Below are positions 1 through 41,877 of a DNA stretch of 64,000 bases, piece after piece. The translations under genes and the position numbers were made by a program. The stretch is from positions 91,574,001-91,638,000 of the forward strand of contig OZ241826.1 of assembly GCA_965202585.1 (NCBI GenBank), read 5' to 3'. The stretch comes from Thalia democratica (Eukaryota). The first letter of the stretch is position 1. Every line of letters begins with the position of its first letter. A model generated the notes under the pieces. That model ran no database searches, had not been told where the DNA came from, and saw only the letters and a program-made list of their open reading frames with translations.

Positions 1-38
1 ACTTAATTATTTTAGTTAAATGCTTTTCCAAACATCAG

Positions 39-3000
39 GAGAACCGCGTTCTGCTGCGAGCTTCCGCCGATGACGTCATATGGTCGAACTACGTCACGTA
101 CGTCGACGAGATGATCGTCGACGGCTGCTTCAACGTGGTGCAGTCCTCCCTGCAGTTCTTCCTCGACGAGACCGACGTTACCAGGCAACCGCTGCCCCTG
201 TTCCAAGCCAAGATGGAGCTGCAGGCCCCTGACATGATATTCATGTGAGTTTTTATGGAAAAAACTGCAATAAAAATTTTATAAAATTTAAAATAACTAA
301 CGGTTTTACCTTTATAAACATTTTGTTTTCTGTTATGATATTCATGTGAGTTATTAACATGGTAGCTATTAGATTTTTGCTTCTAAAACATTTAAAACGT
401 TAAATGGTTGACAATTCGTTTTGTTTTTATTTAAGATTTTAGTGAGTCTTAGCATTTAATTAATTGAAATGGTTGTGTATACTACTTAAAGTTATAACTA
501 GGTGTGCTGTGTAGTACCACTAATAAAATATTTTTTTTCAAGACCGTCTCTGGATGCTTCCAGCGGAAACATCGGTTTTTACCAGCTGATAGACTCCCTG
601 CTCGATGACGTGTACAAGATGACGTCACTGGTACCGAGGCTGTCGAAGATCGTTGATGCGGAAAATTACCAGGTGATAAACTGTTACACTAAACTGAAAA
701 TTAAATTAAAATAGAAACACGTTTTTAAGTATTTTATTAGCAAAAAAACTACAACAAAGTACATGTTTAAAGAATAAAATTATAATATCAAAATATTGTG
801 GTTCGAAGGAATTTTTTAAATACTTTAAAAAGTATAAAAACAACTTTCCTAATAGGCCGACATGGAAGATATGGCCGACTTGTCGGAGAACAAAAACGAA
901 ATAATGGACAGAGTTCACATGGTCATGGACAAGGCTTGCGATTACAGAAACAGGTAATAGGAGAAATTTACAACTTTTGAAGATTAAAGTTAAAAACATA
1001 TATTTTGTAAATGTTATGTTAATCTGAAATATAGCATTAAAGATAAAATAGTTATAATATTAGTTATTTAATTTTTGGTGTATAGTTAAATTAAAGTATG
1101 TTTTTTAAGTTTATACTATTAGTTGATTTTGCTTTATTTGTTTACTTAAAAGTAAAAGTTTGTATTTGTTAAACTTTAATTTTGTTAATTTTCAGTTTTG
1201 ATTAATGAAAAACAGTTAATTTTGATAGAAAAGTATCTGTATTATTTTTCTTATACTTCTTAATTCAATTGGTAGTAATTAAAACTAAAACTTTGAAACC
1301 ATAGTTTGGTTTATAATTTTACGACCGAAATCTTTATAATTAAATCAAAACATTTAAAAAAATCAGTTTCGACAATTACGCATACTTGTGGGTTGACGAG
1401 CGATCGGAATTCATGAAGCAGTTTCTCACTTACGGTCATGTCCTCACCACAGAAGAAATTGAAATGCACGCCGATGAGGGAGTTCCCGAAAACCCGCCCA
1501 CTCTTGAAATGTTCAAGGAACAGGTTTGTTTGATGTCCTATTACAAGAACAGTCTTATATTTTACTTGTCAAGCTTAAGATAAAATAAATTCAATAAATA
1601 TATATAATAACTTTTGTATTTTTAATATTTTTTTATTTAATTTTACGGAGAAAAATCAGTGAAGTGTACAATATTTTTTATAAAAAAAAAAAGCTTACTG
1701 AAAGTTTTCGTTTTTTAGTTTTTTAAAAAAGTTAAAAAAGTTATTTAAACAAATCGCAACTCAATTTGATAAACACAATTTAGGTAGACATGTATGAAAA
1801 GATATACAGCGAAGTGGAATCGATAGACGCGGTGGAGGTGATAGACGGTTGGTTCCGCGTCGACGCCCGCCCCTTCAAGCAGGCGCTCCTCAACACCACC
1901 AAGCGGTGGTCCTTCATGTTCAAGCAGCACCTCATCGATCACGTGACTAACAGGTGGGTTGAAGTTTAGAAAAAGTTGTTTGTTATAATTTGCCTATTTT
2001 TTGCTTAGTATCTGTGGTTAAGTTAGTTATCAGTAAATACTTTGAATTTTAGATGTTTCTATATTTGATACATGCTTAGATTTTTGTATTTTGCTTATTC
2101 AAATATTTCAAGTTCGTAAATTGAAAATTGAATCTTTTTGATAACTTTTATTTTATCTACAATGAATGTAAATGATCAAATTATTGTGTAAATAAACAGT
2201 CTTGCTGATTTGGAGAAATTCATCAAAGAAGTAAATGAAGGTATTTCGGTTGAAATAAAAGACGAAATTGAATATGACGAACTTGTTTCGCTTATCAGTA
2301 ATCTCAGGGTTCGTTCATTTATAGTTTTAGTTGTTGTTAAGTGTAAATATATGCATGCTTGGATAGTTTGGGGAACTATCTTATTATTAAATTGTATTTT
2401 GAGCTCTGATAGTTTTATTCACTATTTTTTCTTAAATTAGATTTTTACTTTAATTCTTACATGTTTAGTTTTTGAGATAATAGTTTTATTATACTAATAA
2501 TACAAATAACAATTAATTTTTTTCTTCACAGGACATCAAGGCGAGACAGAGCAACACGGATGAGATGTTCGAACCTCTGAAGGAAACAATCGAGCTTCTG
2601 AAGACTTACGATCAGGAAATGCCTGATGAAATATACAAGCAGTTAGAAGTGAGATTTTTACATAACTTTTAGAACTGCTGTAAAACGTCTTTTTTTACCT
2701 TTGCAGTTATTTTGTTTTGATTTGTTTTACAGATCAATCCCGTTTCAATAGTAAAATTATATGATCAACATTTTCATACTTGAATCAAACTAAAATAGTT
2801 TTGTTGTATCTTTTGACTTGTTTATTACAACCAGGAATTGTCGAAACAATGGAATTGATTTTTAGCGTCAAACTTGAAAAAAAATTCTATATTTGAATCA
2901 AACAAAAACTTTATTATTATATATACACTTTTTATGTAACTAATGAAATAACAACCAGGAACTACCGGAACAATGGAACAACACGAAGAAGCAAGCGGCA

Positions 3001-6000
3001 CTCATCAAGCAGCAAGTTGCACCTCTGCAGTCCAATGAAGTGGCGCAGTTGAGAAAGAAGTGCTCGCAGTTCGATGTAAGGAAATATTTCATGTTTTTTT
3101 TATTTTGACTGTAAAGTCTTTGAATCAAAAGTAACAGCTTTTGTTAGCACAAATGTCAGTTTATGAATACTGTTCTAGGGTTATGAGTTAATGTTGAAAA
3201 TTATTTGATAGGAAAATTGAATTAAAAGATCTGAAGCAGAATAAAATACATTAATTTTTATTTACCTCAATTTTAAAATTTACATTAAACTTTTTCCAAC
3301 AAAATTATTTATTAAATTAAAAATAAAATAACTGATTGACAAGTTGCTAAATAGTGTAACAGACATTTGCTTTTAACTTACCGTATTTAAAAATTCACAT
3401 TAAAACTTTTTTTCTTCCATCGAAGGTGTCCCAACACGAATTCCGTGAGAAGTTCCGCCAGACGGCGCCGTTCAAGTTCGACTCGGCCAACTACTACGAG
3501 TCTCTTCAAAAGCGACACGAGGAAATCAGCCGCATGGAGGCGACGATGAGCAAATTGTACCAATCGGCGGCCACCTTCGAGGTGAACGCTCCTGACTTCA
3601 AGCAGATGAAGCAGTGCAGGAGAGAGGTTAATTAATATTATTTAATTTTAAAAACAGAAATTAAACTTATAAATTACAAATGTTCCTATACACAATTGTC
3701 ATTATATGGTTTTGAAACTTTATTTTTTTTTCACCTACAAACAATCAGGCATAAAGCGAAATTTAATTCAGTTTTTTTTTATGAAATAAACTAAATGAAG
3801 CAGTGCAGGAGGGAGGTAAGATGATTAGTGTTGTGTTTATATGACCAAATTATTATTTAAGGTGTTAATAAGACTGAGTATTACAAGTGTCGCCTTACTA
3901 AATTGTCATAGTAAAATTAAAAATAACAGACTAAAGTTTGACCTATAAACAATTGACAATACAGCAATTCAAGTTTTTTTAGGAATTGAGCTTAAAACTT
4001 TGTTTAACTTGACATTTTTCGTTACATTTGCATCCCTAAACACTACAAAACTTGAGTTTTAAATTTATGAACATTTCCAGGTGAAACTGCTGAAAACACT
4101 GTGGGACATGATAGTGGTGGTGACGACCTCCATTGACAGCTGGCAGTCCACGAAATGGTCGGAAATCAACGTGGACCAGATGGAGACCGAGTGCAAGAAG
4201 TTCGCCAAGGACATCAGGACGCTCGACAAAGAGGTTTATTTTGTTATGGTGTTAAATCGAAAATAGTTTAAAAGAAGATATAGAGGTTGTTTTATGTTTT
4301 TTATTACGTTTGTTTTGTTTTGGTAAATTGAATTGAAACTAATAAAATCAGTTGATAGTTTTTTGTCCTCGTAAAAATAAGTTTTAATCATTTTGTTGAT
4401 GTATTCAACACATTTTTAAATATAAAGTTTTGATAATAAGTTTACAATGAGTTTGGTATCATACTGTTTGTGTCAAGTTTAACAAAAAAGCGTTTCAAAC
4501 ATTATAATTGATTTCTTATTTATTTTTAAGATGCGGGCATGGGATGCATTTTCGGGATTGGACAGCACGGTCAAGAACACTATGACGTCATTGAGAGCCG
4601 TTTCCGAGCTGCAGAACCCCGCAATAAGAGAAAGGCACTGGCAAGAACTCATGCAGGCAACACAGGTTGGTTTCGAAAATGTAAAAATTAAAATAAGGAT
4701 GATTTTCAATATGTAGCAGTTATCATAAAAAACTTATAATGAAAATTCAAATAATATCATTTAAAATGATGCTGTATTCTTTGTTTAAGTCTTTTAAAAA
4801 CAAAATTCTGTTGATTTGTATGCAAATTTTTATAATCTTAAGTCAACATTTATACGTAAAAAAGTTAAAAAATTTAAATTCTCTAAAGTTGATTAATTTT
4901 TAAATATGCTTTTTCACTCAGCTTATATAAGGTGTGCAAGTGTGTGTACATATTTGGTAAGAAATGTATTTAGTTTATCTAAAATGCAAGTACACTTTAA
5001 CTAAAACAATTTTACCCTCTCTCAGGTGAAATTTATCTGAAACAATTTTATCTTCACAGGTGAAAATTATCTGAAATAATTTTATCTTCACAGGTGAAAA
5101 TTATATGAAATAATTTTATCTTCACAGGTGAAAATTATCTGAAATAATTTTATCTTCACAGGTGAAAATTATCTGAAATAATTTTATCTTCACAGGTGAT
5201 AGAAGCTTAAATCAAGAAATAAAAAATACTTTTTATAAAATAAAAAAAATATATTTTTACCCTATCCCAGGTGAAGTTCGTCATGGACGACACGACCACG
5301 CTGGCCGACCTGCTCTCCCTCAACCTGCACAACTTCGAGGAGGAGGTAAGGGGCATCGTGGACAAGTCGGTGAAGGAGATGGGCATGGAGAAGGTGCTGA
5401 AGGAGCTGGACGCGACGTGGGGAGAAATGAAGTTCAACTACGAGCTGCACCAGCGCACCGGGTTGTCACTCATCCAGTCGGACGAGGAGCTGATCGAGAC
5501 GCTGGAGGAGAATCAGGTTTGTTAAAAGATTGTGAGAGATTTGAGCCAATTTAGCTTTAAACTAGTGTTAAAAATAGTTAAATAGTTTTTTTTTTTAAAA
5601 AGACAAACTTAATTAAAATACTAGATAAAAGTTTGTTAAATAAAAATGTATAAATTAATGTGTTAAATTTAAATAAGTTGTTTGAAATAAAGGCGAACTC
5701 GATTGAAGTATTAGAAAATAGATTGAATTTTAAGCAATAAAACAATTGTTTTCAGTCATGTTTGTGAGAGATTTAAGCCAATTTAGCTTTAAATTAGGAT
5801 TGATAGCTATCAAATAGTTTAAAGTTAAAGCGAGTTCGATTAGAATGTTAGAAACTAGATTGAATTTTAAATTAAAGTCTAATTGTTTTGTTAATGTCTG
5901 TGGGAGAATTAAGTCATTTCCTCTGTAAGCAATTCAAAAACATTAAAAGTCAATAAACAGTTTTAATTTAAAGTTATACCAACCAAGCGTGACGCAAATA

Positions 6001-9000
6001 TTTTTCCCAGGTCCAACTGCAAAACCTGATGACGTCAAAGTACATCGCGCACTTCCTCCACCAGGTGTCGTCGTGGCAGCAGAAGCTGTCCACGGCCGAC
6101 TCGGTCATCGCCATCTGGTTCGAGGTGCAGAGGACGTGGTCCTACCTGGAGGCCATCTTCATCGGGTCGGAGGACATCAGGTCGCAGCTGCCCGAGGACT
6201 CGAAGAGGTTCGAGGGAATCGACGTTGACTTCAAGGTACAGAGTTTTTTTTGTTTGTAAAAATTTAGTTTGCTGTATCTAAATTTTTCAAAAGCTTTTAA
6301 ATTAAAAAGTAGAGTTTAATTTATATGAATTACAAAAGTTGACTTTAAGGTACAGCAGTTTCTTTCGTGTAAATTATGAGTAGAGGAAAACTATTTGCTG
6401 CATGGAAAGTTATGTTTTAAAATGGGTCTTTTAATTAAGAGGTAGAACACACTACGAACATAAATAGATGTTTTAAGACTCCTAAAATCTAAATAAAATT
6501 TTAAAATCACAGCAAACTTCTTCATGATAAACTCAAAATTGACCTTCCACTCGCAAACAAGTCCTCAAGCTACCTAATAGCTGAATAAGATAGCTTGATT
6601 CACTATTTACTTATAAAATTAAAACAAACAAATTCATATTTAAAACATACTTTTAAATGTTAACAAATTAATGTTCAAACAACCCAGGAAGTGGCAAAGA
6701 AGATCCAGGAGACGCCCAACGTGGTCGAGGCCACCAACGCGGCGGGCATATTCGAGAAGCTGGAAGACATCCAGGCGAGACTGTCGCTGTGCGAGAAGGC
6801 GCTCGCTGAGTACCTGGACACGAAGAGGCTGGCCTTTCCCCGGTTCTACTTCGTTTCGTCTGCGGATCTGCTCGACATTCTGTCCAATGGTCAGCTTTTT
6901 TTAACTTTTTTTTAAACTTTAGTAAACGTAAGAGATTGAAGTTAAATAAAAACACGAATTAAACAGTCTTTTGTTCACGAATTTTAAATGGGTGTTATTA
7001 GTAAATAATTAGTGTCTAATATAAGAAAATAAATATAGGTACGTATTTAAAACTTTTTTGATTTTAATGAACTTTAGTTAATGTCAAAAATTTTAAGTTT
7101 ATCTTTATTTAAATATTAGAACAACATCCAGATATATGCTTTCTTTTGAACTTAGGCGAATTATTATAAAAAACATCTGATTCTGTGCATACTAAATTAA
7201 TATTGAAAAAAGGCACGGATCCAGTGGCAGTTTCGAAGCATCTCGCCAAACTGTTCGACAACATGGCCAAGCTCGAATTCGAAATGGACAAAGACGACAA
7301 CCCAACCAAAGTTGCCGTGGGAATGTACAGCAAAGAATCCGAGTTAGTTTGTTGAGCTGAAAAGTTTACAATTCAAGTTACTACTGATGAATAAGAACAA
7401 CTTAAAATCTTTGTATTTTTTAAATAACACATTTCTGATGAAAAGTTTTAGTATAATTAAAATAAAATTGTATAATCGTTTCAAGTATAATCACCAAAGG
7501 TATGTGCAGTTATGCATTTTGTAAAAAAACAACTTAAGCGCAATGTTTATTTCAAATAGAAATAAAACATTGACTGAAAATATTGATTTATTTAGTTATT
7601 TATCAAAGGTACGCGCAGTTCGACAAGACGTGCGACTGCGTGGGCCAAGTCGAGGTGTGGCTGAACCGGCTGATGGAAACGATGCGGTCCACGGTGAGGG
7701 ACCGGATAACCGAGGGCATGGTCACGTACGAGGAGAAGCCGAGGGAGAGCTGGATATTCGATTATCCGGCCCAGGTTGGTTGTATGGGAAATATTTGATG
7801 GCTAAACAATTAAAATGTATAGTTTTTTTAATGTTCACAGTCTCTAAAAATAAAGATTTCTAATTTACTGTTATTTCTCTTATAACTTTTGTTCTAAAAT
7901 TATAAAATTTATTGATTATAAACCCTGTATGCATATGTGCATTAAATAAATTAACATTTTTTGTAGCACAAAATTTGATGAAGGTTGTATAAAGTGGCAC
8001 TTTTATGCTATTTGTTAATGTTTTAGATTAGTAACACCTAAAAGAATTAATTTGTGATATTCATACAGTGTGCTTAAGAAGTATTATTAGTAATGTTACA
8101 TACTATATGACATCTTTTGTTTTATTTAACTTAACAAAATTTTTACGGTTAACACTATTCAGGTATCTCTGCTTGGAACACAAATTTGGTGGACCACGGA
8201 AGTGAACATTGCCTTTTCGAGACTGGAAGAAGGATACGAAAATTCCATGAAAGATTACTACAAAAAACAGGTTAGAAATGAAAAACGTAGAATACTCTTA
8301 TTACCATTTAGATCTTTTAAGAAGCATAAGTTTAAGTAACACATGTTGCTGTATCATATTGTTCCAATTAAACAAGATTGTTAACTTTAGATCAACCAAC
8401 TGAACACGCTCATTGGACTTCTCGTAGGAGATTTGTCAAAAAGAGATCGGCAGAACATCATGACGATTTGCACGATCGACGTGCACGCGAAAGACGTCGT
8501 TGGAAAGCTTGTGGAACAAAAAGTTAGTTTTGTTTATTAAATCTTATTAGAATCAACCTTCCAAAAACCTAAACAGTCATTTTTATTATTCCTAAAAGGC
8601 AGATAAAAGCGTTTTTAAAAAATGTACAGAATTATCTAATATAAAATTTTAATGAAAATTTTTGAAAAACTTTAACAAACCTAACGTAAACTTCTGCTTG
8701 TTCAAAAACGCACAATCCGAAACCATTCTTAAAATAAACAAACCAACGTTTTAGAATCTAATAAAACCTCAACAGATCGACAGCGCGCTTGCGTTCATAT
8801 AATTTCTAAATATATTTATGCATATTAAATGTATTTTGTTCATATTTTTTTTATACAAAAATTAACAAACAATCAAATAAAACCTCAACAGATCGACAGC
8901 GCGCTTGCGTTCATATAATTTCTAAATATATTTATGCACATTAAATGTATTTTGTTCATACTTTTATTACATAAAATTGAACAAACAATCAAATAAAACC

Positions 9001-12000
9001 TCACCAGATTGACAGCGCATTAGCGTTCATGTGGTTGCGCCAACTGCGCCTGCGGTGGGACGACAAGCTGAACCACGCGTTCGCCAACATCTGCGACGCC
9101 CAGTTCAAGTATTCGTACGAGTACCTCGGGTGCACCCCAAGGCTCGTCATCACCCCACTCACCGATCGGTGAGTTGTCGGAAATATTATGTGTAGAATTT
9201 TTTTTAAAGTTTTATAAAATGAGTTCAAGGCTCTTTAACAAACTTACTGATCAGTAAATTGTTGTTTGTGGAGAAAAAGAGCTTTGACAAAACTTCTATA
9301 AGCTCTAAATAAGTTGAATAAAGATGTTACAGTTATATTTATCTTTAAGTTGGGAAAATTTAATAAAGTGCAAAATTATAAAAAAAAAATTAATTAATAA
9401 AAACAAAATACTGTTAATGCAATTTTATATATTAAGTTTAATGTTTAGATTTCAAATTTTCAGCAATTAAAACTTCAGGTTATGAAATATGACTAACTTT
9501 ATTCATTTCAGTTGTTACATCACGCTGACGCAATCGCTCCACCTGACGATGAGCGGGGCTCCCGCGGGGCCGGCGGGTACCGGGAAGACCGAGACGACCA
9601 AGGACCTGGGCAGGGCGCTGGGCATAATGGTGTACGTGTTCAACTGCAGCGAGCAGATGGACTACAAATCGTGCGGAAACATATACAAGGTGAAAATTAT
9701 TAAAAAAACGGTTTAAAAATGCGAAAGTATGTTGTTTCATTTACATTTACTAGGTATGTGGGTGATGCTGACGGTGTTTGTTGAAATATTAATTTTTTAC
9801 AACTTTACTTATTTTACAACTAAAACTGTTTGTCTTAAGTATAGTGAACTGCCCGATCCGGATCTTTTATTAAAAGTAAGATTTAAATTGATTTCTAGAA
9901 GTTAAAGTGATAATAACTAGATTATTAGGTATTTTTTTTAAACAAAAGCATTGTATCATAATAAGTGCATGTTGATGGTAAAAAGTGAAAATGAAGCGAC
10001 TTATTTATTTAGTAAGTTAGAATCTAGTATTAAATCCATGTTTTATCTAGGGCTTGGCGCAAACCGGAGCTTGGGGATGTTTCGACGAGTTCAACAGGAT
10101 TTCCGTTGAAGTCTTGTCCGTGGTGGCTGTGCAAGTTAGTGGTTTTAATTTTATTAAAAAACAGTTTACAGCAAGTTGTGAAATAATTAAGCAAACTAAC
10201 TGTAACAGTCTCAAGTGTTAATCAAGTATATCAAATTATAGCTATCAGTAAAACTTTCAGGTCAAGTGTATACAAGACGCGATCAAGGAGAAACGGGAAA
10301 GGTTCGACTTCTTGGGAGAAGAGATCAATCTGGTTCCGACGGTCGGCCTGTTCATAACCATGAACCCCGGGTACGCCGGAAGAACCGAACTTCCCGAAAA
10401 TCTTAAGGCTCTTTTCAGGTCAGTAGATTTAAAAAACTTTATGAAAAATATAAACTGTTTGTTTGAGGATAGCTTTAAAAAGTACAAGATTGTGTGCTTG
10501 AGGTGCATATATAAGCAACATGGCTGATAAAAAATGACAAATATTTAATTAATCATCTACTATTTAATTTAACAAAAAAAAGTTAAACTTTGTTTAGGTT
10601 ACAATGTTTGGCTGAAAAACAGCTCTTTGTAAAGCAATAAAATACAAAATAGGTTTTGCTCCTAACGTAAGCTGTATTAATCGAACTTAGTAATTTTATA
10701 CGAGATTGCTTAATAAAAGTATAAGCTACAAATAAGTCTTAATATTAACTATTACCAAATGTAGTAATTTGGTAAAAGATACATTCAAGTGTACTTAATG
10801 TAAGCTGTATTGGTCGGATGTAGTCATTTGAAGAGTGATTGTACAGATAGTTGAAAAAGCATTTTCAGTAATACTGTTTCCAAACAACAGGCCGTGCGCG
10901 ATGGTGGTGCCCGACTTCGCCATGATATGCGAGATCATGCTGGTGGCGGAGGGGTTCATCGACAACAGATTATTAGCCAGGAAGTTCATCACCCTGTACA
11001 CCCTATGCAGGGAGCTGCTTAGCAAGCAGGACCACTACGACTGGGGACTGAGGGCCATCAAGTCCGTGCTGGTGGTGGCCGGCACGCTGAAGAGAAGCGA
11101 CCCCGGCAGGGCTGAAGACCAGGTTTGTTTTTATACTGTTTCTGTAGATATTTTGAATTAAAATCTTACACTACAGTGACTACCTTTGTTTCTTTACTTA
11201 GTTTTAGTATGAAGCATATCAAAAAGTTGACATCTTACGAATAAGTAGGTTAAAAATTAATAAAACTTTTAAAAATTGTCTTTACATATAAGGTTTCCTT
11301 ACAACAGTTTCTTTAATAAGGGCGTTCACAATTGTTTATTTAACAACAACTAGTGCCTCTTCAGAATGTTTTTGTTTTAAAAATACTTTTACATTAATTT
11401 CAACTAAGGTCCTTATGAGAGCGTTGCGCGACTTCAACATACCGAAGATAGTCACCGATGACATGCCGGTCTTCATGGGGTTGATCGGAGATCTGTTCCC
11501 CGCAATCGACGTTCCCAGGAAGAGAGATCCCGAGTTTGAGAAGATTGTTAAGGTGTGTTGAGATTTGCAGGGTTCCGGTTGAACATAAGAGTTGTTTTCT
11601 GGATTTTAATTTTTTGTCAAAGTAAACTGATTAGCTTAAATATTAAAGTAGAAAAAAAATTGTTACAATTTTTAAATTTTCTTTTGAAAAGCATTCTGTG
11701 TTTGGCTTATTATTCTGCTATTATAAAAATAAGCAAGAAGTTGCTTTTAATATGCTTGACCGATCCTTAATTTTAATATTAATAATTTTGTAAATTATTA
11801 AAATCTTACTGTAATTACAGCAATCGATGATCGAGATGAAGTTGCAGCCGGAAGACAACTTCTTGCTGAAGATTGTTCAGTTGGAAGAATTGTTGTCAGT
11901 CAGACATTCCGTGTTCGTCATCGGTAACGCCGGTACCGGAAAATCCCAGGTACTTAAGGCACAGTTTTATTTTGTAAGATGCACATTTTATGAAAACTGT

Positions 12001-33000: not shown

Positions 33001-36000
33001 AATATATAAATATTATAATTAAATAAATAAGTGTTTAAATTTTTAATATTTTACGCTTACTTTTTTCAACAATAACCAATACTTTAATTCCTATGTATGT
33101 AATGTATGTTTGATTGAAAATATTTTAACAAAGGTGTTGCTGATGCAAAAAGCGATCAACGCGAAGGAGTTGGAATTTCTGCTGAGATTTCCCACTCAAT
33201 CGGCCACCAGTCCCGTCGATTTCCTCAGCAACAATTCGTGGGGAACTATCAAGGTGAGCTTATTGAGGCTGTATGGCGTTAATATAAAAACAACTAGTCT
33301 ATGATATAAAACTTTAATGTCTTTTTTGTTGGGGTTCATAAAATAACTGTTGCTTAAAACACATGCGTTTGTGTTTGAAATGTGTATTAGTTGTACAAGC
33401 ATAAGATATGTATGAAAAATTAAACGTAAAAGTAAACTTATATGTTTATATTTTACAAGCGGAATACTTTGTTTCTTACTTGTTCCCTTTTATTTTTCAC
33501 AAGTTTCACAAACAAAACTCAACACGACTTTGTAGTTCTGAAACGCAAACCAAATATAATCTTCAGTTGCTGGCGGACATGGACGAGTTCCGGGGGCTGG
33601 ACAAGGACATCGAGGGGTCGGCGAAGCGGTGGAAGAAGCTGGTGGAGAGCGAGGCGCCGGAGAAGGAGAAGCTCCCCCAGGAGTGGAAGAACAAGAACAG
33701 CATCCAGAAGCTGTGCATTATGAGGGCGCTCCGGCCCGACAGGATGACCTACGCAGTCAGGTGAGAGGAGAAAATACATTAAATAGTTATTTTCATTTGC
33801 TGGTTTTAAAAAATAGGTTCTTTAAATTATGAACATTAAACAATTGCAACTAAGTATTTTTTGATTTATATATACTGACCCGACAGGATGACCTACGCAG
33901 TGAGGTGAGAGGAGAAAATACTTTTAATAGTTATTTTCATTTACTTTAAAAAAAATAGGTTCTTTAACTATGAACATTAAATAACTGCAATTAAGTATTT
34001 TTTGATTTATATATACTGACGCGACAAGATGACCTACGCCGTCAGGTGAGAAAATATATTTAAAAAAATATATTTTGTTTAAAGTTTTAGATTGCTTGTC
34101 AAAAACGACTTGATAAGTTTTAGGTTGAAGTTTACTTAAAACAAACTTAACGTCAGAATGATTTACGATCTCAGGTGACTAAGTGTATATAAACTATCAA
34201 AATTATAATATTTGATTTAGTATTTAAAAGCTAGTTGACCGATTTGTTTTTATGATGTTATGATATTTTTACAATAATGAACGACCTATGCCGTCGAGTG
34301 AAACAAAAAAAAATATTTTTTTTTAACTAGTTAGAATAAAAACAATTCGTTTTGGTGAAATAAATTTTCAACAAAACAAGATTAGAAATAGTTGTGTGTT
34401 ATATGCACTAAAAAATATTTTTTAATGTTATACTTTATATTTTTTCAGGGATTTTGTTGATCAGAACCTTGGTAACGAGTATGTTGAAACAAGGGGAATA
34501 CCCTTTGAAAAATCCTTCGAAGAAACCGGGCCTCAGACCCCAACCTTCTTCATATTGTCACCCGGTTCGTTGTTTGTTTTAAATTTAAATTTTCAAGTTT
34601 TTTAGAATAAAACTATTGCTTCTTCTTTCAATAATTCCTTAAAGTTATGAAGACAGTCAGTTAAAATTTTTGTTACGCTTACAGATCGCGTAACAAAAAT
34701 ACTTTTCAACAATACAATTCATAATACTTGAAGATATAAAACTAATTTGTTAAACACCCGCTTTTCACTGAAAATTTGATCAGTTCTCCAAATAAAATTT
34801 TACTCAACAGGTGCACTTAAACAACTGAAAAAAAAAATGTATAAAATATCTATATTTCACCACAAATTTACTCACAGGAGTGGACCCGCTGACGGACGTG
34901 GAGAAGTTGGGCAAGAAGCTCGGCTTCAGCATGGACAACAAGAACTTCCACAACGTGTCCCTCGGTCAGGGACAGGAGGTGGTGGCCGAGAGCGCGCTGG
35001 ACGTCGCCGCCGAGAAGGGACACTGGGTCATACTGCAGAACATCCACTTGGTGGCCAAGTGGCTCATGACCCTCCAGAACAAAATTGAAAAGGTTTACTT
35101 GATGGAATTTTACCTTGAATACTTTAGTTGCTTTCTTTTCGGTTGACTGTAGCAGACAGTGAAATAGTTAAAATTAAGTTGAGAAAAAATAATACCTATT
35201 TTTCTGTTAAATTTATTTTAGAAAGTGTTTAGATAATACTAATATAATTACTTTAAAAAATAATAATTAAGAGTATTTTTCAAAAACGCTTTGTTGTTAC
35301 TGAACTTTAACGGAAACCTATTTATTCGTTTTTGTTAACAATAGAAATATTTAACATATACAACACTAAGTATACTAAAATTAAAATATGTTTACTTCAA
35401 CCTACAGCAGTGGTAGTTTGATTTTAAAAGTAATTAAACAACCAATAAAAACACTAAGTTTCTTAGTGCAAGTTTTTCCACAGCACAGTGACGGCGAGGC
35501 TCACAAGGACTTCAGGATATTCATGAGCGCGGAACCGGCGGGGTCCCCGGAGTACCACATAATTCCGCAGGGGATCCTGGAAAACTCGATCAAGATCACC
35601 AACGAGCCTCCCACCGGGATGCACTCCAACATCCACAAGGCTCTCGATAACTTCAATCAGGTAAAGTTTTAGTAAAAGTTTTTAATTTTAATTCTTTTAT
35701 TTTATTTTTTTTTTTAGTTTTCTTTAAATTAGCTTATTGAAGCGGTAAAACCATAGGAAAGAGCAGAAACAGTAGATCTAAACAAAAATTACTTTGTAAT
35801 TATTTAATATCATTATTCGTTCTTTATCAATAAAAAACTTTGCTTTGTTACCAAACGCAAAACAAAACTTATTTCAACACAAATTATTCAACAGGATACT
35901 TTGGAAATGCGTTTACTAATTACTTTTGAATTTTGTCTAAAACTAATTAAAGCTCTAAAACTAATACTAAAAAAGAGTAGAAAGTTGTACCGAAATAAAC

Positions 36001-39000
36001 AGTATATTTAGAAAAAAAATTTCATTGCATAATTTAACTTGTGACGATCGCTCGACTCCTCGGTACTTTCCCTAGACGGAGCCGGCGGTCGAGACTTCTC
36101 TGTTTCGCTAACAACGGGATCAGGCGCGTTGGCTGACTCAGAGCGAGTTGTCATTTTGGCCAATTTCTTGGCAACTTGTTTTGAATTCATGTCGCGCTAC
36201 TTATCGATTGATATACCGCGAATGAATGGTCAAGTAGTATAAACTAAAACAACAAAAATGTATAAACACAATTATTTATTAAAAGAACTCACAACGTAAA
36301 ATATAACACACAAGTAATCTTTATAATCGTAAGTAAATGAACACAAGTATAATATTAGACTAAAACTAGCAAAAAGTAAAACACTGACTTTTGTCTATAT
36401 CGTCTATGCGATCAAGAAGCGCATGCGATAAAAAGCGCATGCGATACAAAAGCGACGTAATCGTTCATGCGTAGTATATATAGTGCTTTAACAATCCCTT
36501 TTTCCTAATTCTCTCAATTTATAACAGAGCATGTCTGTTAGACTGCTACAAACTAACTAATGTAGATCTGAGTTCTAAAATGACAATACCATGCATTTTT
36601 TAGTTTTAAGTTGTTGTTAGTTTACCTATTAGCAACTTTAGCTCAATTGGTATAAAAAATGCAATTTTTTTAACTACTAAAATGTTCAACAGGACACTTT
36701 GGAAATGTGCGCCAGAGAGCAGGAGTTCAAAGCAATTTTGTTCGCGCTGTGCTACTTCCACGCGGTGGTGTGCGAGAGAAGAAAGTTCGGTCCTCAGGGA
36801 TGGAACAGGGTCTACCCGTACAACACCGGCGATCTGACCATCTCCGTCAACGTCCTGTACAACTACCTGGAAGCCAACAACAAGGTGATTTATAAATAAA
36901 ATAGATGAAAAGCTTGTAAGACTGCGAAAGCGATACAAGTTGAATAAAAAATGAATGAGTTTTGTTTTAATTGCAAAAATTAAATGCAAGTGTACAAATT
37001 TTGTAGTTGTATTATGTGTTATGTTAAACAGTTAAAAGCAATCTATTTTTTTTAATGCTTTGTAAAAGATTGCAACGTTTGAATAATATACTAAAATACA
37101 CTTGACACTAAGATTAAGTAAATTTAGTTCTAAAGTAAGTTTATAATGTTTTATGTTCTAATGATAATAAGTACAAAATATGCATTTACCACTAAGGGAT
37201 ACTTTACAAACAAATTTGATGCATATTGAACACAAGGTACCATGGGACGATCTTCGGTACTTGTTCGGTGAGATCATGTACGGGGGACACATCACGGACG
37301 ATTGGGATAGGAGGTTGTGCAGGACCTACCTGCAGGAGTTCATGAACCAGGAGATGTTCGATACCACCATCTACCTGGCACCGGGATTCCCCGTACCCCC
37401 ATCATTGGATTACAACGGTACGTTTGATGTTTTATTTTTTATGTTAAGATGTATATTGATTGGTATTTCTAGATGCATTATTCTTGTAAAATACGAGTTC
37501 TTTTGTGTAAAACTTAGTAGATGGCATTAGTTTTTTTTAATGAAATAAGTTTATCCGTTAAGTTGGTTTTGGAATAAAGCAGTTATCAATTTATGCTTTT
37601 TAGAAATACAAGTAATCATAATTGTAAACAGTTTGCTTAACATTGGCAAACCTACGACCCGTAAAACTTCAAACATTCTTAAAAATATTTATTCTATTCT
37701 AAAACTAGTTTGATGACTTATTTCTTTAAAAGTTTAATAAACTACAATAAAAACAAAACGCAGGGTACCACCAGTACATCGACGACGCCCTGCCTCCAGA
37801 GTCCCCGTATTTGTACGGGCTGCACCCCAACGCCGAGATAGACTTTCTCACTTCGACCTCGGACAACCTGTTCCGGACCATATTGGACCTCACCCCCAGG
37901 GACTCCGGGACGAGCGGCGATTCCGGAGACACCAGGGAGGAAAAAGTTGGTTCTTTGATAAAATAAAAATGTTGCGGGTTTTAAGTAGTTTGGTGTACAG
38001 CTAGTCAATTTTTATTTTAGTTAAAGAACTTTATTCAACACCATCTCTGAAAAACGTCACATTCGATGTTAACATGTTTAAACAACATTTAGCCAAATGT
38101 CTACTTAGTATAAATTAATTAACAGATAAAGTCGATATTAGACGAGATACTAGACAAACTGCCGGACCTGTTCAACATGTTCGAGCTGCAAGCGAAAGTT
38201 GATCCGAGCGAGAGAACTCCTTACATGGTGGTGGCGTACCAGGAATGCGAGAGAATGAACGTGCTCATTGGCGAGATAAGGTTTGAAAGATGTTTTATAG
38301 ATTTCATGCAAAGTTTTTATTTTGTTTGATAATTAAATATTCGCACTGAATAAAATACTATTCTTAACTTTTTGTGAAAATATTTACATCATTATTTTAA
38401 AATTAACAACTTTTTGACAGTATATCAATTTAGAAACTTATAAGCTTTAACCAAGTGTAATAGTTATTCTTTTCTTTGATTTTTAATCGATATATTTATT
38501 TGGTAATTTTATCTCACAAAGGTCCACACTGAAGTCGCTGGATCTTGGTCTGAAGGGAGAACTGACGATAACTCCGCAGATGGAGGCGCTGGGGAATTCC
38601 CTATTTCTAAACACGATTCCGGAAAGCTGGGCAGCCAAGGCGTACCCCTCCATGGCCGGATTGAGCTCATGGTTTGTTTGTTGAACAAATTTTTGGTTTT
38701 AATAAACTAGTGACAAGTGTGTTTGTATGTTATTTTTTTTTTAACTAAATCAGGGTTGCCACTCGGTCAGGAAAAGTCAGGAAATCAGGAAAAGTCAGGA
38801 AAAATTTTAAAAAATGACAAAAGTCAGGAAAAGTCAGGAAAAAATTGGGGGTTTTGAAAAAAAGTCAGGAAAAGTCAGGAAATTTGATAAAATTAAAAAA
38901 AAAATTCAGGTTTTATCAGATTAAATTTACAAAATTCCTTGTTTTCCAAAGCCTTCAAATGGTAAAAATTAATTAAAGGTCCTTTAAAGTCAGAAAAAAA

Positions 39001-41877
39001 TTCCAAAATTTTCCTAGAAATTTACAAAAATGTTTAATTTTATTTCCAATGCCTTCATCTGGTATAAATTAGTAAAATATCCTTTATAAAACTGCAAAAA
39101 TTTTCTATTAACATATTGAACAAGTACCCTACTTGAACAAGAAGGTTTTGTAAGCTTTTTAGTATTGATGATCTGTAGCAAAGACACTTCCATAGTGAAA
39201 CTGTGATATAGAAACAAAAGTTTATCTAGCATAATTTTAGAATCAAAGTGTTTTTTGTTTAAGTAAATAATTGAGTTCTTTATAACTAAGCAGTTAGTTT
39301 AGTATTTTATGTAACAAGTTAATGTGTACACTGAACCGGAATGCAGACCTAATGAAGGAAACCATATCTTCATTAGATGAAGAGGTTGAAGTGCTAATAA
39401 AAAAACGAAGAAAATAAATTTTAGTACATACATAAAAAGAAACAGTATTTGATTAAGATCTTAATTGTTTTAATGTTTTAAATGTAAAAGTTCGTTATTG
39501 TTTTAAGGTTTGTGTTGTAATAGTTCGTTATTGATTTAAGGTTTTAATTGTAAAAGTTCCTTATATGTCGGTTGTTTTTTCTAGATACATTTATGCTAGG
39601 AAATGCTAAAAAAATGTGTCTTTTTTCAGACAGGCTGTGTTTATAAGGTAATAATACAAGTATTTTGCTGATAGAGCTGTTTATTACAAACATCAATCAT
39701 ACACAGATGGTTTAAGTGATGTACTGGAAGTTTGATGATAGAATTCAGCAAAAAACTGTTGTTTTTAACCTGTATTGAAATTAGATTGAAAGCTTTATAT
39801 AGTTTTAAGTGTTAGGTTATGTATTTTAGAATAAGTTTAGTTTAAGAGTTTGATGTAGAAAAGTCAGGAAAATTTTTGTAAAAAGTCAGGAAAAGTCAGG
39901 AAATTTTTCTCAGCTTGAACAGTGGCAACCATGCTAAATATTTTACTTAGTAGAACTACGTTTTTAATGTATTTGAGTAAAATTTGTTTTATTAAATATT
40001 CTTTTTCTTTTGTAATACTATAATATTGTTGGTTTTAATAAACTAGTGACAAGTGTGTTTGTATGTTTGTTTTTTTTAACTAAATATTTTACTTAGTAGA
40101 ACTACGTTTTTAATGTATTTGAGTGAAATTCGTTTAATTAATAACTCTTTTTCTTTTGTAATATTATACAAAATACTAAAAAAGGTATTTTATCAATGTG
40201 CTAAGTAGTGCCATAGTATATTTTAAAAGATTCTTAACAATAGTACAAAATTGCTTAACATTTTAAAACAACAGTACAGTTAATAAAATAAATATGTCAT
40301 TAACTCCGGTATGTTTAACTGCTAATTGTATAAAATGTGGCTTACTAACGTTAGATCTCACAAAATCTGGTAAAAATAAATGCGTATTACAAACACAGGT
40401 ACGCTGACCTGCTGAGCAGAATACGGGAGCTGGAAACGTGGACGACAGATTTCCAGCTGCCCGCTGCTGTGTGGCTGGGAGGACTCTTCAATCCTCAGTC
40501 CTTCCTCACCGCTATCATGCAGGTTTGTTTTATGTATAATTTTCAAGTCATAGCTCTTCACTGCTTTTGTACAAAGTCATTGACATAACTGCAAAAACTT
40601 TTTTTTTTGAATATCATTCATTAATCATAATACTTACTTTACATTGGTTAAAACTTTGCAGTAATATTTTTTAGTTGTTTCCTAAAAGTAATTTAAACAA
40701 AAGCATATTTTTTCAAAATTTTCAATCCCTAAACAAGTAGGAACAATCTTTGGGAAAAATTATTTACTTTTTTTTTAAAGTTAACAACAAAAATGTTTAA
40801 TTGTTGTGTTAGAAAAATAATCTCTTTATTTCCAAAAAATTAACAACAAACATTATTAACAGGCGATGGCTCGAAAGAACGAGTGGCCATTGGACAAGAT
40901 GTGCCTGCAGTGTGACGTAACAAAGAAAACGAAGGAGGACTTCAGCAGTTCGCCGAGAGAGGGCGCCTACATTCACAGCTTGTACATGGAAGGTTTGTGT
41001 TTGCAAGTTTTTGTAAAATATAAAAAGTTTTTTGTTTTATTTTCATAAGCAAGCAGGTCTATCTGGCAGTTATTATCAAACGCATAATTTTTTTAAGTTC
41101 TTTCAGATGTGTCTCAAAAATGTTCGAAACTAGTTTAAGTAACATCTAATGTTTAACTTAATTCCTTCTAATTTTTCACACTCATCATCGTCAGTATACC
41201 ATGAAATTATTTAAACTTTCAAGTTTTACAACAAACAAGTTTTAAATTAATATAAATATTTATTCACAGGAGCTAGGTGGGATCCTCAGGCGTCTGTGAT
41301 ATCTGAAGGAATCCTGAAAGAGCTCACTCCAAGCATGCCAGTTATTTTCATAAAGGTACATTTTATTATACTGGTGTAAGTAACAAAAATAATTATTTCG
41401 TGTTTTGTTAAGACTTTTTAAGTTACTATATATATTTTTTGTTTTAGCATGTTAAGGACGTTTTAAAAGTTCTTTAATGTTTCTATAAGGTTTTCATTTA
41501 CTATAAGTATGATATACAAAATTAAACTTAAATCAATTCCAATCTAATTTTTGTTAATTAAAGTTTATGAATTTAAAGCTATCCGTTTTCTCAATAATTA
41601 AACTGTTACAACTGATTAATGCATTTAGAAAGTAGTGTTTTCAAATACAAAACATTAACAGACGATACCGAAAACGAAAAGTTATCAAATTATTTATATT
41701 TTATTTTAAAAACAGGCGATCCCGGTGGACAAGCAGGACACGAGGAGCGTGTACGCGTGCCCGGTGTACAAGACCAAGATGAGGGGACCCACATTCGTGT
41801 GGACCTTCAATTTGAAAACAAAACTCCCGCCGAACAAGTGGACGCTGGGCGGCGTGGCCATACTGCTCCAAGTTTGA
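39..41877 (+). CDS. DNAH9: Axonemal dynein heavy chain, outer-arm beta type (DNAH9/DNAH11/DNAH17 orthology group); 5'-partial, 70 exons in window
   Basis: Manual splicing gives one continuous frame of 3,624 aa ending ...GGVAILLQV*. Exons: 39-244,543-672,856-953,1367-1523,1784-1953,2200-2308,2532-2648,2959-3075,3426-3626,4081-4233,4531-4665,5271-5516,6011-6235,6688-6889,7213-7342,7609-7774,8163-8270,8391-8522,9008-9168,9512-9689,10051-10134,10261-10418,10891-11122,11409-11552,11821-11949,12223-12319,12794-12957,13207-13310,13716-13868,14591-14765,15070-15243,15584-15791,16008-16173,16587-16689,17129-17368,18126-18287,18642-18835,19226-19388,19523-19597,20239-20430,21127-21288,21567-21655,21994-22138,22746-23006,26655-26798,26989-27111,27543-27701,27924-28039,28283-28386,28448-28536,28731-28966,29400-29522,30157-30361,31013-31157,31641-31801,32514-32684,33134-33253,33567-33760,34449-34564,34878-35092,35484-35660,36693-36884,37237-37417,37764-37945,38126-38280,38522-38671,40399-40522,40863-40992,41270-41355,41716-41877. 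Four P-loops: [32 protein letters not shown]. Also [22 protein letters not shown], the stalk [29 protein letters not shown], and the C-terminus typical of DNAH9/17-type chains. The symbol marks the orthology group; a one-to-one assignment among DNAH9/11/17 is not possible. Confidence 0.96.
5005..5200 (+). repeat. 34-bp tandem repeat derived from the exon-12 acceptor
   Basis: caggtg occurs at 5023, 5057, 5091, 5125, 5159 and 5193; unit caggtgaaaattatctgaaataattttatcttca. The first copy (ttttaccctctctcaggtgaa) resembles the real acceptor ttttaccctatcccag|gtgaag at 5270. Confidence 0.9.
8761..9035 (+). repeat. 116-bp tandem triplication spanning the intron-18/exon-19 junction
   Basis: aaacctca(a/c)cag|at(c/t)gacagcgc... 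with AG ending at 8775, 8891 and 9007 (the real acceptor). Confidence 0.9.
14165..14437. repeat. Two (TA)n microsatellites bracketing a ~230-bp segment
   Basis: (ta)~10 at about 14166-14186 and 14416-14436. A third (ta)n tract lies at about 61810-61838. Confidence 0.7.
23165..26390 (+). mobile_element. Non-autonomous hAT DNA transposon (3.2 kb) in dynein intron 44
   Basis: 12-bp TIR caggggtcggca ... tgccgacccctg; perfect 8-bp TSD gtatatgc (23157-23164 and 26391-26398); subterminal gcggcccgcg repeats; no transposase ORF. Confidence 0.92.
24485..25807. mobile_element. Possible nested TIR element inside the hAT insertion
   Basis: Starts cagtgttgcc and ends ggcaaccatg, with subterminal aaaacttgaa and aactcagg repeats. 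The ends resemble those of the 38751-39933 element. The flanks (aacaat/taaaat) match only imperfectly as a TSD. Confidence 0.4.
27252..27462. mobile_element. hAT-type MITE (211 bp) in dynein intron 46
   Basis: TIR cagtgatataccggac ... gtccggtacatcacta; perfect 8-bp TSD cttaaaac (27244-27251, 27463-27470); three internal copies of a ~40-bp unit containing aaaaaagtccggat...ccggccggat. Confidence 0.88.
29790..30190 (+). repeat. ~175-bp tandem triplication spanning the intron-52/exon-53 junction
   Basis: ag|gt(a/g)catcaaga... with AG ending at 29805, 29979 and 30156 (the real acceptor). Confidence 0.85.
31775..32225 (+). repeat. Tandem copies (~54-55 bp) of the exon-55 3' end and donor
   Basis: catgtaccagttctca(t/c)tgaag|gttt occurs four times between 31780 and 31970, with decayed copies near 32020, 32090-32160 and 32200. 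Confidence 0.9.
33730..34300 (+). repeat. ~140-bp tandem copies of the exon-58 3' end and donor, progressively decayed
   Basis: cgacaggatgacctacgcagtcag|gtgag (real, ends 33760) is echoed near 33880-33910, 34021-34050, 34150-34180 and 34278-34300. Confidence 0.85.
35951..36487 (-). mobile_element. Kolobok-like non-autonomous element (TTAA-flanked, AG termini) in dynein intron 61
   Basis: Flanked by TTAA on both sides (35947-35950, 36488-36491). Short imperfect TIR agctcta/agcacta. CpG-rich interior with two gcgcatgcga motifs and a truncated minus-strand ORF (36190-36008, [19 protein letters not shown]...). Confidence 0.55.
38751..39933. mobile_element. Non-autonomous TIR DNA transposon with 6-bp TSD in dynein intron 66
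   Basis: TIR cagggttgccact ... agtggcaaccatg; multiple subterminal aaaagtcagga repeats at both ends; ctaaat duplicated at 38745-38750 and 39934-39939. An uninterrupted copy of the target site lies at about 40028-40100. Confidence 0.85.

Follow-up and report, generated by a model that had tools for sequence, protein, structure and literature searches.

Textbook accounts of animal splicing give a fixed place to the polypyrimidine tract and to U2AF65, the protein that reads it. What becomes of an acceptor when the tract is gone? In C. elegans, both U2AF subunits reportedly bind a short UUUUCAG/R sequence, without a long tract or a branch consensus. Mammalian in-vitro work has described 'AG-dependent' introns, a minority class with weak tracts that requires U2AF35. 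In vertebrate isochores, splice-site composition is said to depend on GC content, and exon definition with it. Here we set beside these systems the 3' splice sites of a 64,000-nucleotide (nt) stretch of the salp Thalia democratica genome (assembly GCA_965202585.1, contig OZ241826.1, positions 91,574,001 to 91,638,000 of the forward strand; hereafter the window), which carries an outer-arm axonemal dynein heavy-chain gene.

A tunicate has been described as well. In the larvacean Fritillaria borealis, U2AF1 and U2AF2 are duplicated and a beta heterodimer serves weak, purine-interrupted tracts; the same 2026 paper, in whose text salps and thaliaceans go unmentioned, describes a uridine-rich tract as typical of all the other genomes studied there (PMC13326754). 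Two salp genome papers contain no splice-signal analysis (PMC10686999, PMC5174732), and our literature search on splice sites in thaliaceans yielded no relevant paper.

Ordinary U2-type GT-AG introns of the Thalia genome have almost no polypyrimidine tract at their 3' ends. AG does not occur and G is scarce in the 30-40 nt before the acceptor, where A keeps its intron-wide level of ~36-42%. The sole pyrimidine signal is a weak preference spanning at most 6 nt at about -9 to -5, joined by a C or a T, and at times an A, at -3 and by G at +1, and the exon start is marked by a sharp rise in GC. The pyrimidine found at these positions varies with the downstream exon: T before exons with AT-ending codons, C in step with third-position codon GC (GC3). 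Taken whole, the explanation we favour, that of tract-poor U2-type acceptors whose letters are set by exon GC3 and whose U2AF has been kept, strikes us as probable, though well short of assured.

Acceptors without a pyrimidine tract

The whole window is very AT-rich (GC 0.24-0.35) and dotted with short GC-rich islands. On translation, the plus-strand islands match dynein heavy chains of the axonemal outer arm, with DNAH17 and DNAH9 as the closest solved relatives:

1..41874, + strand: 3' four fifths of a DNAH9/11/17-type gene for an outer-arm axonemal dynein heavy chain, covering reference residues ~827-4447; protein-guided alignment

The reference was P0078, a dynein heavy chain of 4447 amino acids and the best fit among the full-length representatives found by protein search. 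Alignment was performed with a purpose-written protein-to-genome dynamic programme that requires introns to be GT/GC...AG and admits all three phases. It contains zero tract, branch or weight-matrix scoring and therefore cannot bias the calls towards or away from any acceptor type. The gene has 70 exons and 69 introns in the window (36-41874), GT-AG in 69 of 69, with medians of 350 nt for introns and 156 nt for internal exons. Its GC3 is 0.75 versus an intron-interior GC of 0.24 (A 0.363, T 0.393, C 0.113, G 0.131; pyrimidine 0.506). A single intron, at 23007-26654, is 3648 nt long versus the gene median of 350 nt. The upstream N-terminal exons aligned poorly (4 of 20 junctions high-confidence) and were used solely to place an acceptor at base 38.

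In this gene the pyrimidine fraction at single positions from -20 to -4 runs from 0.41 to 0.64, T is not enriched and A lies at 0.35-0.54. The real signals are a drop of G to 0-4% at -13 to -5 and a climb of C to 0.20-0.28 at -8 to -4. An earlier sequence-only reading of the window had described acceptors that lack a pyrimidine tract and are preceded by A/C runs, and that observation is confirmed. It had counted 51 CAG, 13 AAG and 6 TAG among 70 acceptors. Our independent alignment gives C, A and T at -3 in 49, 14 and 6 of the 69 window introns, or 50, 14 and 6 (n=70) with the acceptor at base 38, and the quoted acceptors at 7212, 10890, 15069 and 37763 coincide exactly with alignment calls. 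A further string, quoted at 51476 on the minus strand as belonging to a USP gene, is present with open frame after it; the USP gene model itself is a candidate only.

The tract is effectively missing beyond the window gene too. Four further dynein heavy-chain genes of the same assembly were aligned with the same programme, so that the five genes lie on C1, C8 and C10 (paralog regions C8:38960001-39000000 and C1:62830001-62870000). The set holds 333 introns, of which 281 gapless junctions were used for composition. GT-AG ends were found in 261 of the 264 introns of the other four genes; the 3 GC-AG calls fall in the poorly aligned C10a and C10b. Across the 281 junctions the pyrimidine fraction from -20 to -4 is 0.54, versus 0.50-0.52 in intron interiors, and the longest pyrimidine run in -40 to -4 has a median of 5, equal to that of interior control segments. 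The pyrimidine-rich, mainly U tract of some 10-20 nt that stands before the AG at a canonical metazoan U2-type 3' end is thus absent. A mild enrichment of T at -9 to -5 (0.50-0.60) is seen in the GC3-poor genes. Other canonical elements are present: C and T together make up 0.80 of the letters at -3 in the window gene and 0.81-0.92 overall, with G at most 3% and A 7-20%, and the AG-free zone before the acceptor has a median of 38 nt in the window gene and 28-38 nt across genes, versus 11 nt between interior AGs. Restricting the analysis to high-confidence junctions left the numbers unchanged.

Would the same code have seen a tract if there were one? The only usable animal control was the orthologous locus of the fish Cyprinodon variegatus (assembly GCA_000732505.1, KL652502.1:399001-457183; species named via papers citing the assembly), whose gene encodes P0078. 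Other control loci were dropped: P0054, P0120, P0138 and P0132 were colinear (intronless) and the 13.7-kb locus of P0112 was almost intronless, all of them coming from metagenome, read-assembly or other non-animal assemblies. In the fish a plain tract is found, with pyrimidine 0.64-0.77 and A 0.14-0.22 at -20 to -5, a longest pyrimidine run with a median of 7 versus 4 in interiors, and an AG-free zone with a median of 31 nt. Relative entropy over -20 to -4 is 2.3 bits in the fish versus 0.6-1.4 in the salp genes. Real acceptors were further tested against decoy intronic AGs, with the area under the curve (AUC) taken for each feature:

Tract pyrimidine content: AUC 0.55-0.58 in Thalia, 0.90 in fish
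AG-free zone: AUC 0.72-0.78 in Thalia, 0.86 in fish
G at +1: AUC 0.71-0.75 in Thalia, 0.69 in fish
GC of the next 30 nt: AUC 0.90-0.92 in Thalia, 0.72 in fish

The contrast holds intron by intron. Residue and phase are identical to the fish ortholog at 43 window introns, and at these the fish has pyrimidine 0.687 and A 0.196 versus 0.528 and 0.424 in the window gene (paired Wilcoxon p=4e-6 and 1e-7). A difference from the fish is seen in the GC3-poor paralog too, with pyrimidine 0.570 versus 0.665 (p=9e-4).

The calls themselves are backed by conserved positions and by RNA. Residue and phase are identical to a paralog at 33 window introns. The window stretch is present in one RNA run alone, X1, at a small share; two further runs, X2 and X3, behave as source-organism DNA. 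Spliced contigs of X1 (~95% identical) fit 10 of 10 junctions in 2200-8199, equivalent cut positions being allowed, and cover four AAG acceptors (3425, 4530, 7212 and 7608). At 12 of the 14 AAG sites there is no other in-frame AG within 12 nt. X1 is a 2016 marine metatranscriptome whose differences from the window are mostly A>G and T>C; its transcripts could stem from a population that has diverged or from a near relative, or could show GC3 drive caught in progress. The individual acceptors are as follows, with a slash at the splice junction:

19..38, + strand: acceptor no. 70, of an intron that begins before the window, TTTTCCAAACATCAG/gag (also CAAACATCAG/gag); upstream-exon alignment
2200..8199, + strand: RNA-supported stretch with acceptors 2958, 3425, 4080, 4530, 5270, 6010, 6687, 7212, 7608 and 8162; X1 contigs
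523..542, + strand: AAG acceptor TTTTTTTTCAAG/acc; alignment, other in-frame AG absent within 12 nt
2521..2540, + strand: AAG acceptor GGACATCAAG/gcg, the least certain, with an in-frame CAG 9 nt away on both sides; alignment
3406..3425, + strand: AAG acceptor TTCCATCGAAG/gtg; alignment and RNA contig
4511..4530, + strand: AAG acceptor TTATTTTTAAG/atg; alignment and RNA contig
7193..7212, + strand: AAG acceptor TATTGAAAAAAG/gca, cited in the earlier reading; alignment and RNA contig
7589..7608, + strand: AAG acceptor TTATTTATCAAAG/gta; alignment and RNA contig
11389..11408, + strand: AAG acceptor TTTCAACTAAG/gtc, TAG at the same intron position of paralog C8a; alignment
13696..13715, + strand: AAG acceptor AATTACCAAAG/ggc; alignment
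18106..18125, + strand: AAG acceptor CAATTTTCAAG/gga, AAG also at the same position of paralog C8a; alignment
20219..20238, + strand: AAG acceptor TTTAATCAAAG/gtc, TAG at the same position of paralog C8a; alignment
22726..22745, + strand: AAG acceptor TTCAACTCAAG/gtg, TAG at the same position of paralog C8a; alignment
33114..33133, + strand: AAG acceptor TTTTAACAAAG/gtg, CAG at the same position of paralog C8a; alignment
37217..37236, + strand: AAG acceptor TTGAACACAAG/gta, TAG at the same position of paralog C8a; alignment
38502..38521, + strand: AAG acceptor ATCTCACAAAG/gtc; alignment
10871..10890, + strand: A/C-rich CAG acceptor TTTCCAAACAACAG/gcc, cited earlier, the same intron in fish ending in TTTGTGTCCTTTACAG; alignment
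15050..15069, + strand: A/C-rich CAG acceptor TTTTTAAAACAACAG/ttg, cited earlier; alignment
37744..37763, + strand: A/C-rich CAG acceptor AATAAAAACAAAACGCAG/ggt, cited earlier; alignment
51476..51495, - strand: candidate A/C-rich USP-gene acceptor gcaacaaaacaaacacag/gtttg, with open frame and then GT at about 51410; string match

GT stands directly after 8 of the 14 AAG acceptors (AAG/GT) versus 13 of the 49 CAG acceptors, so that those AAG junctions resemble a donor site. The donors proper of the window gene (69) have T at +3 in 55%, A in 19% and G in 22%, with forms such as GTTTGT and GTTGGT, G at +5 in 71% and T at +6 in 72%. Elsewhere A comes first at +3, in the GC3-poor paralog C8a (57%) and in the fish ortholog (A 45, G 22, T 10, C 4; n=81). 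No clear association was found between the donor +3 letter and the acceptor type of the same intron. Minor-spliceosome (U12-type) introns, in which a tract is lacking too, were considered and rejected: the donor (A/G)TATCCT occurs in 0 of 333 introns, and the branch box TCCTTAAC is lacking likewise, CCTTAAC standing in the last 40 nt of 1 of 333.

Exon GC3 and the letters of the acceptor

Why do the acceptors of the window gene look rich in A and C? The five genes differ widely in GC3 and have alike intron interiors (GC ~0.24), and the letter at -3 separates them:

Window gene: GC3 0.75; C/T/A/G at -3 49/6/14/0
C10a: GC3 0.72; C/T/A/G at -3 35/11/11/6
C10b: GC3 0.68; C/T/A/G at -3 42/11/12/2
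C8a: GC3 0.39; C/T/A/G at -3 37/37/5/2
C1b: GC3 0.35; C/T/A/G at -3 26/24/3/0

The difference in TAG between GC3-rich and GC3-poor genes is pronounced (p=5e-9). As the GC3 of the downstream exon rises from <0.3 to >0.75, TAG falls from 60% to 4% and CAG climbs from 30% to 84%; over -12 to -4, C rises from 0.10 to 0.25 and T falls from 0.46 to 0.32, while A stays at 0.35-0.39 throughout. The correlation with GC3 is present within every GC3-rich gene (r=0.30-0.41), among whose single exons GC3 ranges from 0.14 to 1.0. Over the last 30-70 nt to the acceptor C climbs in the GC3-rich genes and is flat in the GC3-poor ones. The 'A/C-rich' look is therefore made of two parts, an A that is constant genome-wide and a C that tracks the local exon. 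Since the GC3 of the window gene is 0.75, its acceptors read A plus C, TAG is nearly gone and the AAG minority outnumbers it. A GC3 of 0.75 here and of 0.39 and 0.35 in the paralogs, with the same intron interiors, indicates that the driver acts on exons and not on regions.

These data also bear on the claim that AAG outnumbers TAG. It stands for the window gene (14 versus 6) and fails as a property of the organism, for in C8a (T37/C37/A5/G2) and C1b (T24/C26/A3), both with AT-ending codons, TAG equals CAG and AAG is ~6%. Nor is AAG unusually common in the window gene, as had been supposed. The share of AAG is 14 of 69 (20%) there and 15 of 81 (18.5%) in the fish ortholog (p=0.84), so the premise fails for this gene; it is TAG that is depleted, at 6 of 69 versus 26 of 81 (p=6e-4). 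At intron positions common with the Thalia genome the AAG share in the fish is 15.5%. The genome-wide share of AAG acceptors in vertebrates is a few percent, and the fish ortholog lies well above it.

Splicing factors and competing explanations

Are the proteins that read the tract still encoded? A search with a U2AF large-subunit model identified two colinear multi-exon loci, and a small-subunit gene was found as well:

C4:70843232-70847423, - strand: U2AF2 copy, introns 250-630 nt; large-subunit model
C6:36152353-36161975, + strand: U2AF2 copy, introns 290-2100 nt; large-subunit model
C2:71514187-71514804, - strand: U2AF1, an intronless open reading frame (ORF) of 205 codons; aligned end-to-end with S. 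pombe U2AF23, E 2e-72

The RRM1 and RRM2 exons of both U2AF2 loci match human U2AF65 best, with PUF60 well behind, and keep the RNP motifs; the two loci have matching RRM exons and the same exon structure. The copies share 83% protein identity over 321 aligned residues, and third positions agree at 54% of identical residues, which points to an old duplication with both copies constrained by purifying selection. Their synonymous sites are near saturation, and the duplication is old and retained. The likeness to human U2AF65 was read in RRM1 and RRM2. In gene models for which each paralog served as reference for the other, the first three junctions were unreliable, and the introns of these models were excluded from all counts. 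In U2AF1 both zinc fingers and Ser34 are intact. Its ORF has a short RS tail and a GC3 of 0.72. Because it lacks introns where the vertebrate gene is multi-exon, it may have arisen as a retrogene and taken over. A second U2AF1 did not turn up in an exon-by-exon zinc-finger search, which could miss an intron-containing copy. The helix-hairpin domain of SF1 is present, so that SF1, U2AF2 and U2AF1 are all encoded, as in a canonical system. The best TIGR01642 hit, which lies on C8, was rejected as a U2AF2, being a CstF-64-like protein; its gene is an intronless 500-codon ORF at C8:47573094-47574596 with a long N-terminal repeat (G)PNMNxN.

With the U2AF heterodimer (U2AF1 and two old U2AF2 copies) and SF1 kept, acceptors may still be bound by U2AF as weak-tract 'AG-dependent' sites. 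Recognition would lean on the contact of the small subunit with yAG/G and on taking whichever AG comes first after the branch site. Exon definition across short (~156 nt) GC-rich exons amid AT-rich introns would contribute. The simplest account of the T-to-C shift would be a weak-to-strong substitution pressure centred on exons and reaching 10-70 nt into the intron, at whose 3' end it may be filtered by selection against G.

The sequence-only reading had gone further, proposing that 3' splice-site definition is largely independent of U2AF65 and the tract. Acceptors would in that case be found by other means, such as the branch site and the first AG, or exon-bound factors alone. Its interpretation is partly supported: the tract is nearly uninformative in the five genes, and A is not excluded even where the counterpart introns of the fish have a clear tract. 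Independence from U2AF itself is unsupported, because U2AF1, SF1 and both U2AF2 copies are intact and conserved. The check that it had proposed, for loss or substitution in the U2AF2 RRMs and the U2AF1 zinc fingers, found no decay; the RNP motifs match those of human U2AF65, and 83% protein versus 54% third-position identity speaks of long purifying selection on the two U2AF2 genes. There is also a residual preference for T and C at -9 to -5, and a strong compensating branch consensus, as in yeasts, was not found, CTAAY and ACTAA being only ~2-fold enriched at 15-30 nt; the canonical yUnAy consensus would lie 18-40 nt upstream. We regard independence as unlikely. That the whole pattern is an artefact, with acceptors mis-called or a mere AT-rich background taken for a signal, is hardly credible. 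The earlier reader had no tools, and homology-guided junctions may slip by one codon; against this stand the fit of the RNA contigs at all ten junctions and the exact positions common to paralog and fish. As for background, fish introns are also AT-rich (GC 0.35) and yet show a strong tract under the same code, and T is the commonest intron base in Thalia, so that a T tract would cost nothing.

Two further proposals give the A/C-rich ends a partner of their own. The U2AF2 paralogs might divide labour, one serving T-type acceptors and the other the A/C-type acceptors of GC3-rich exons, after the manner of alpha and beta in Fritillaria borealis, where weak, A-rich intron ends are preferred by beta U2AF2 (PMC13326754). 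In its favour stand an old duplication and two full U2AF2 loci whose exon structure is the same. Against it, both copies are about equally near human U2AF65 with the same RNP motifs, a second U2AF1 was not seen in a search that was not exhaustive, and the window introns are all GT-AG; we give the proposal a low probability. Alternatively, A/C-rich 3' ends might pair with the G/U-rich 5' ends of their own introns (GUUUGUU with AACAAAC) and so replace the tract. The words AACAA, AAACA and CAAAC are indeed 2.2-3.3 fold enriched in the last 45 nt of introns of GC3-rich genes, and, read in reverse, they are complementary to the common donor GTTTGTT. However, the duplex energy of an intron's own ends is -4.97 versus -4.72 kcal/mol for swapped ends (permutation p=0.16), ~-5 kcal/mol is too weak to matter, and the same motifs are expected from T-to-C changes in AATAA and AAATA. 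With p values of 0.16, 0.20 and 0.32 for own versus swapped ends in three genes, pairing was rejected, and we hold it to be very unlikely.

Several observations weigh against tract-poor, U2AF-bound acceptors shaped by exon GC3, the explanation we retain. The junctions with RNA support number only 10 and come from a ~95% identical sample of another individual. All 333 introns belong to one family, the five axonemal dynein genes, and C10a and C10b were aligned to references only ~43% identical. The fish gene model comes from a gene finder that possibly favours tracts, yet 58 of its 81 intron positions are common to the Thalia genome. AAG is not flat with GC3: it reaches 30% in the 0.60-0.75 bin versus 7-9% elsewhere, and 16% in GC3-rich versus 7% in GC3-poor genes (p=0.016), so that calling it an unchanged minority is a simplification and spill-over from the exon is insufficient alone. 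Where the paralog has T, the window gene has C ten times and A four times, and for this reason a pure weak-to-strong shift does not suffice either. Finally, AG-dependent U2AF binding and exon definition are steps that we infer from the sequence.

Comparison with known systems

What does the Thalia genome offer? It has 43 introns at exact fish positions from which the tract has been lost, together with highly conserved reader proteins. This is a natural system in which to ask what U2AF does without a tract, and how far the AG, the small subunit and exon composition can carry the choice of a 3' splice site. True Thalia acceptors will receive low scores from gene finders and splice predictors whose training was on other animals. 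The exon-level link of GC3 to the letters at -3 and -9 to -5 means that the GC-enriching force reaches into the splice signal, and it is relevant to the question of a mutational or a selective origin of that force.

Like C. elegans, Thalia lacks an extended tract and has a pyrimidine signal within ~6 nt of the AG, a weak branch consensus and both U2AF subunits. Unlike the near-invariant U-run of the nematode, T at -8 to -5 is only 0.32-0.60 here and A is 0.27-0.46, with C filling in by GC3-rich exons; over -7 to -4, GC3-rich genes have T at 0.29-0.39 and GC3-poor genes at 0.39-0.60, far from a near-invariant U.

The likeness to Fritillaria borealis lies in a tunicate with duplicated U2AF2 and intron ends that are purine-interrupted or A-rich. 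The introns of F. borealis are mostly non-GT/AG, whereas those of the window are GT-AG in 69 of 69; its beta paralogs are divergent and its U2AF1 is duplicated, whereas in Thalia a single U2AF1 was found and both U2AF2 copies have conservative RRM1 and RRM2 domains. It is conceivable, if rather improbable, that a tunicate lineage dropped the tract at ancient chordate introns while keeping the full U2AF and SF1 set, with its two U2AF2 copies split between T-type and A/C-type acceptors; Thalia would then be a second, independent case of retuned U2AF, with GT-AG retained.

As in vertebrate isochores, the tract region and -3 are richer in C by GC-rich exons, and the setting of GC-rich exons among AT-rich introns agrees with exon definition. 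In isochores, introns change composition along with their exons, and acceptors always keep a tract. In Thalia, by contrast, the GC of intron interiors is 0.24 at an exon GC3 of 0.35 and of 0.75 alike, only the last tens of nt shift, and a tract is found in neither class. The weak tract, the yAG/G context and a small subunit whose two zinc fingers are conserved residue for residue resemble the AG-dependent introns of mammals. There such introns are a minority; in Thalia, AG dependence would be the default state.

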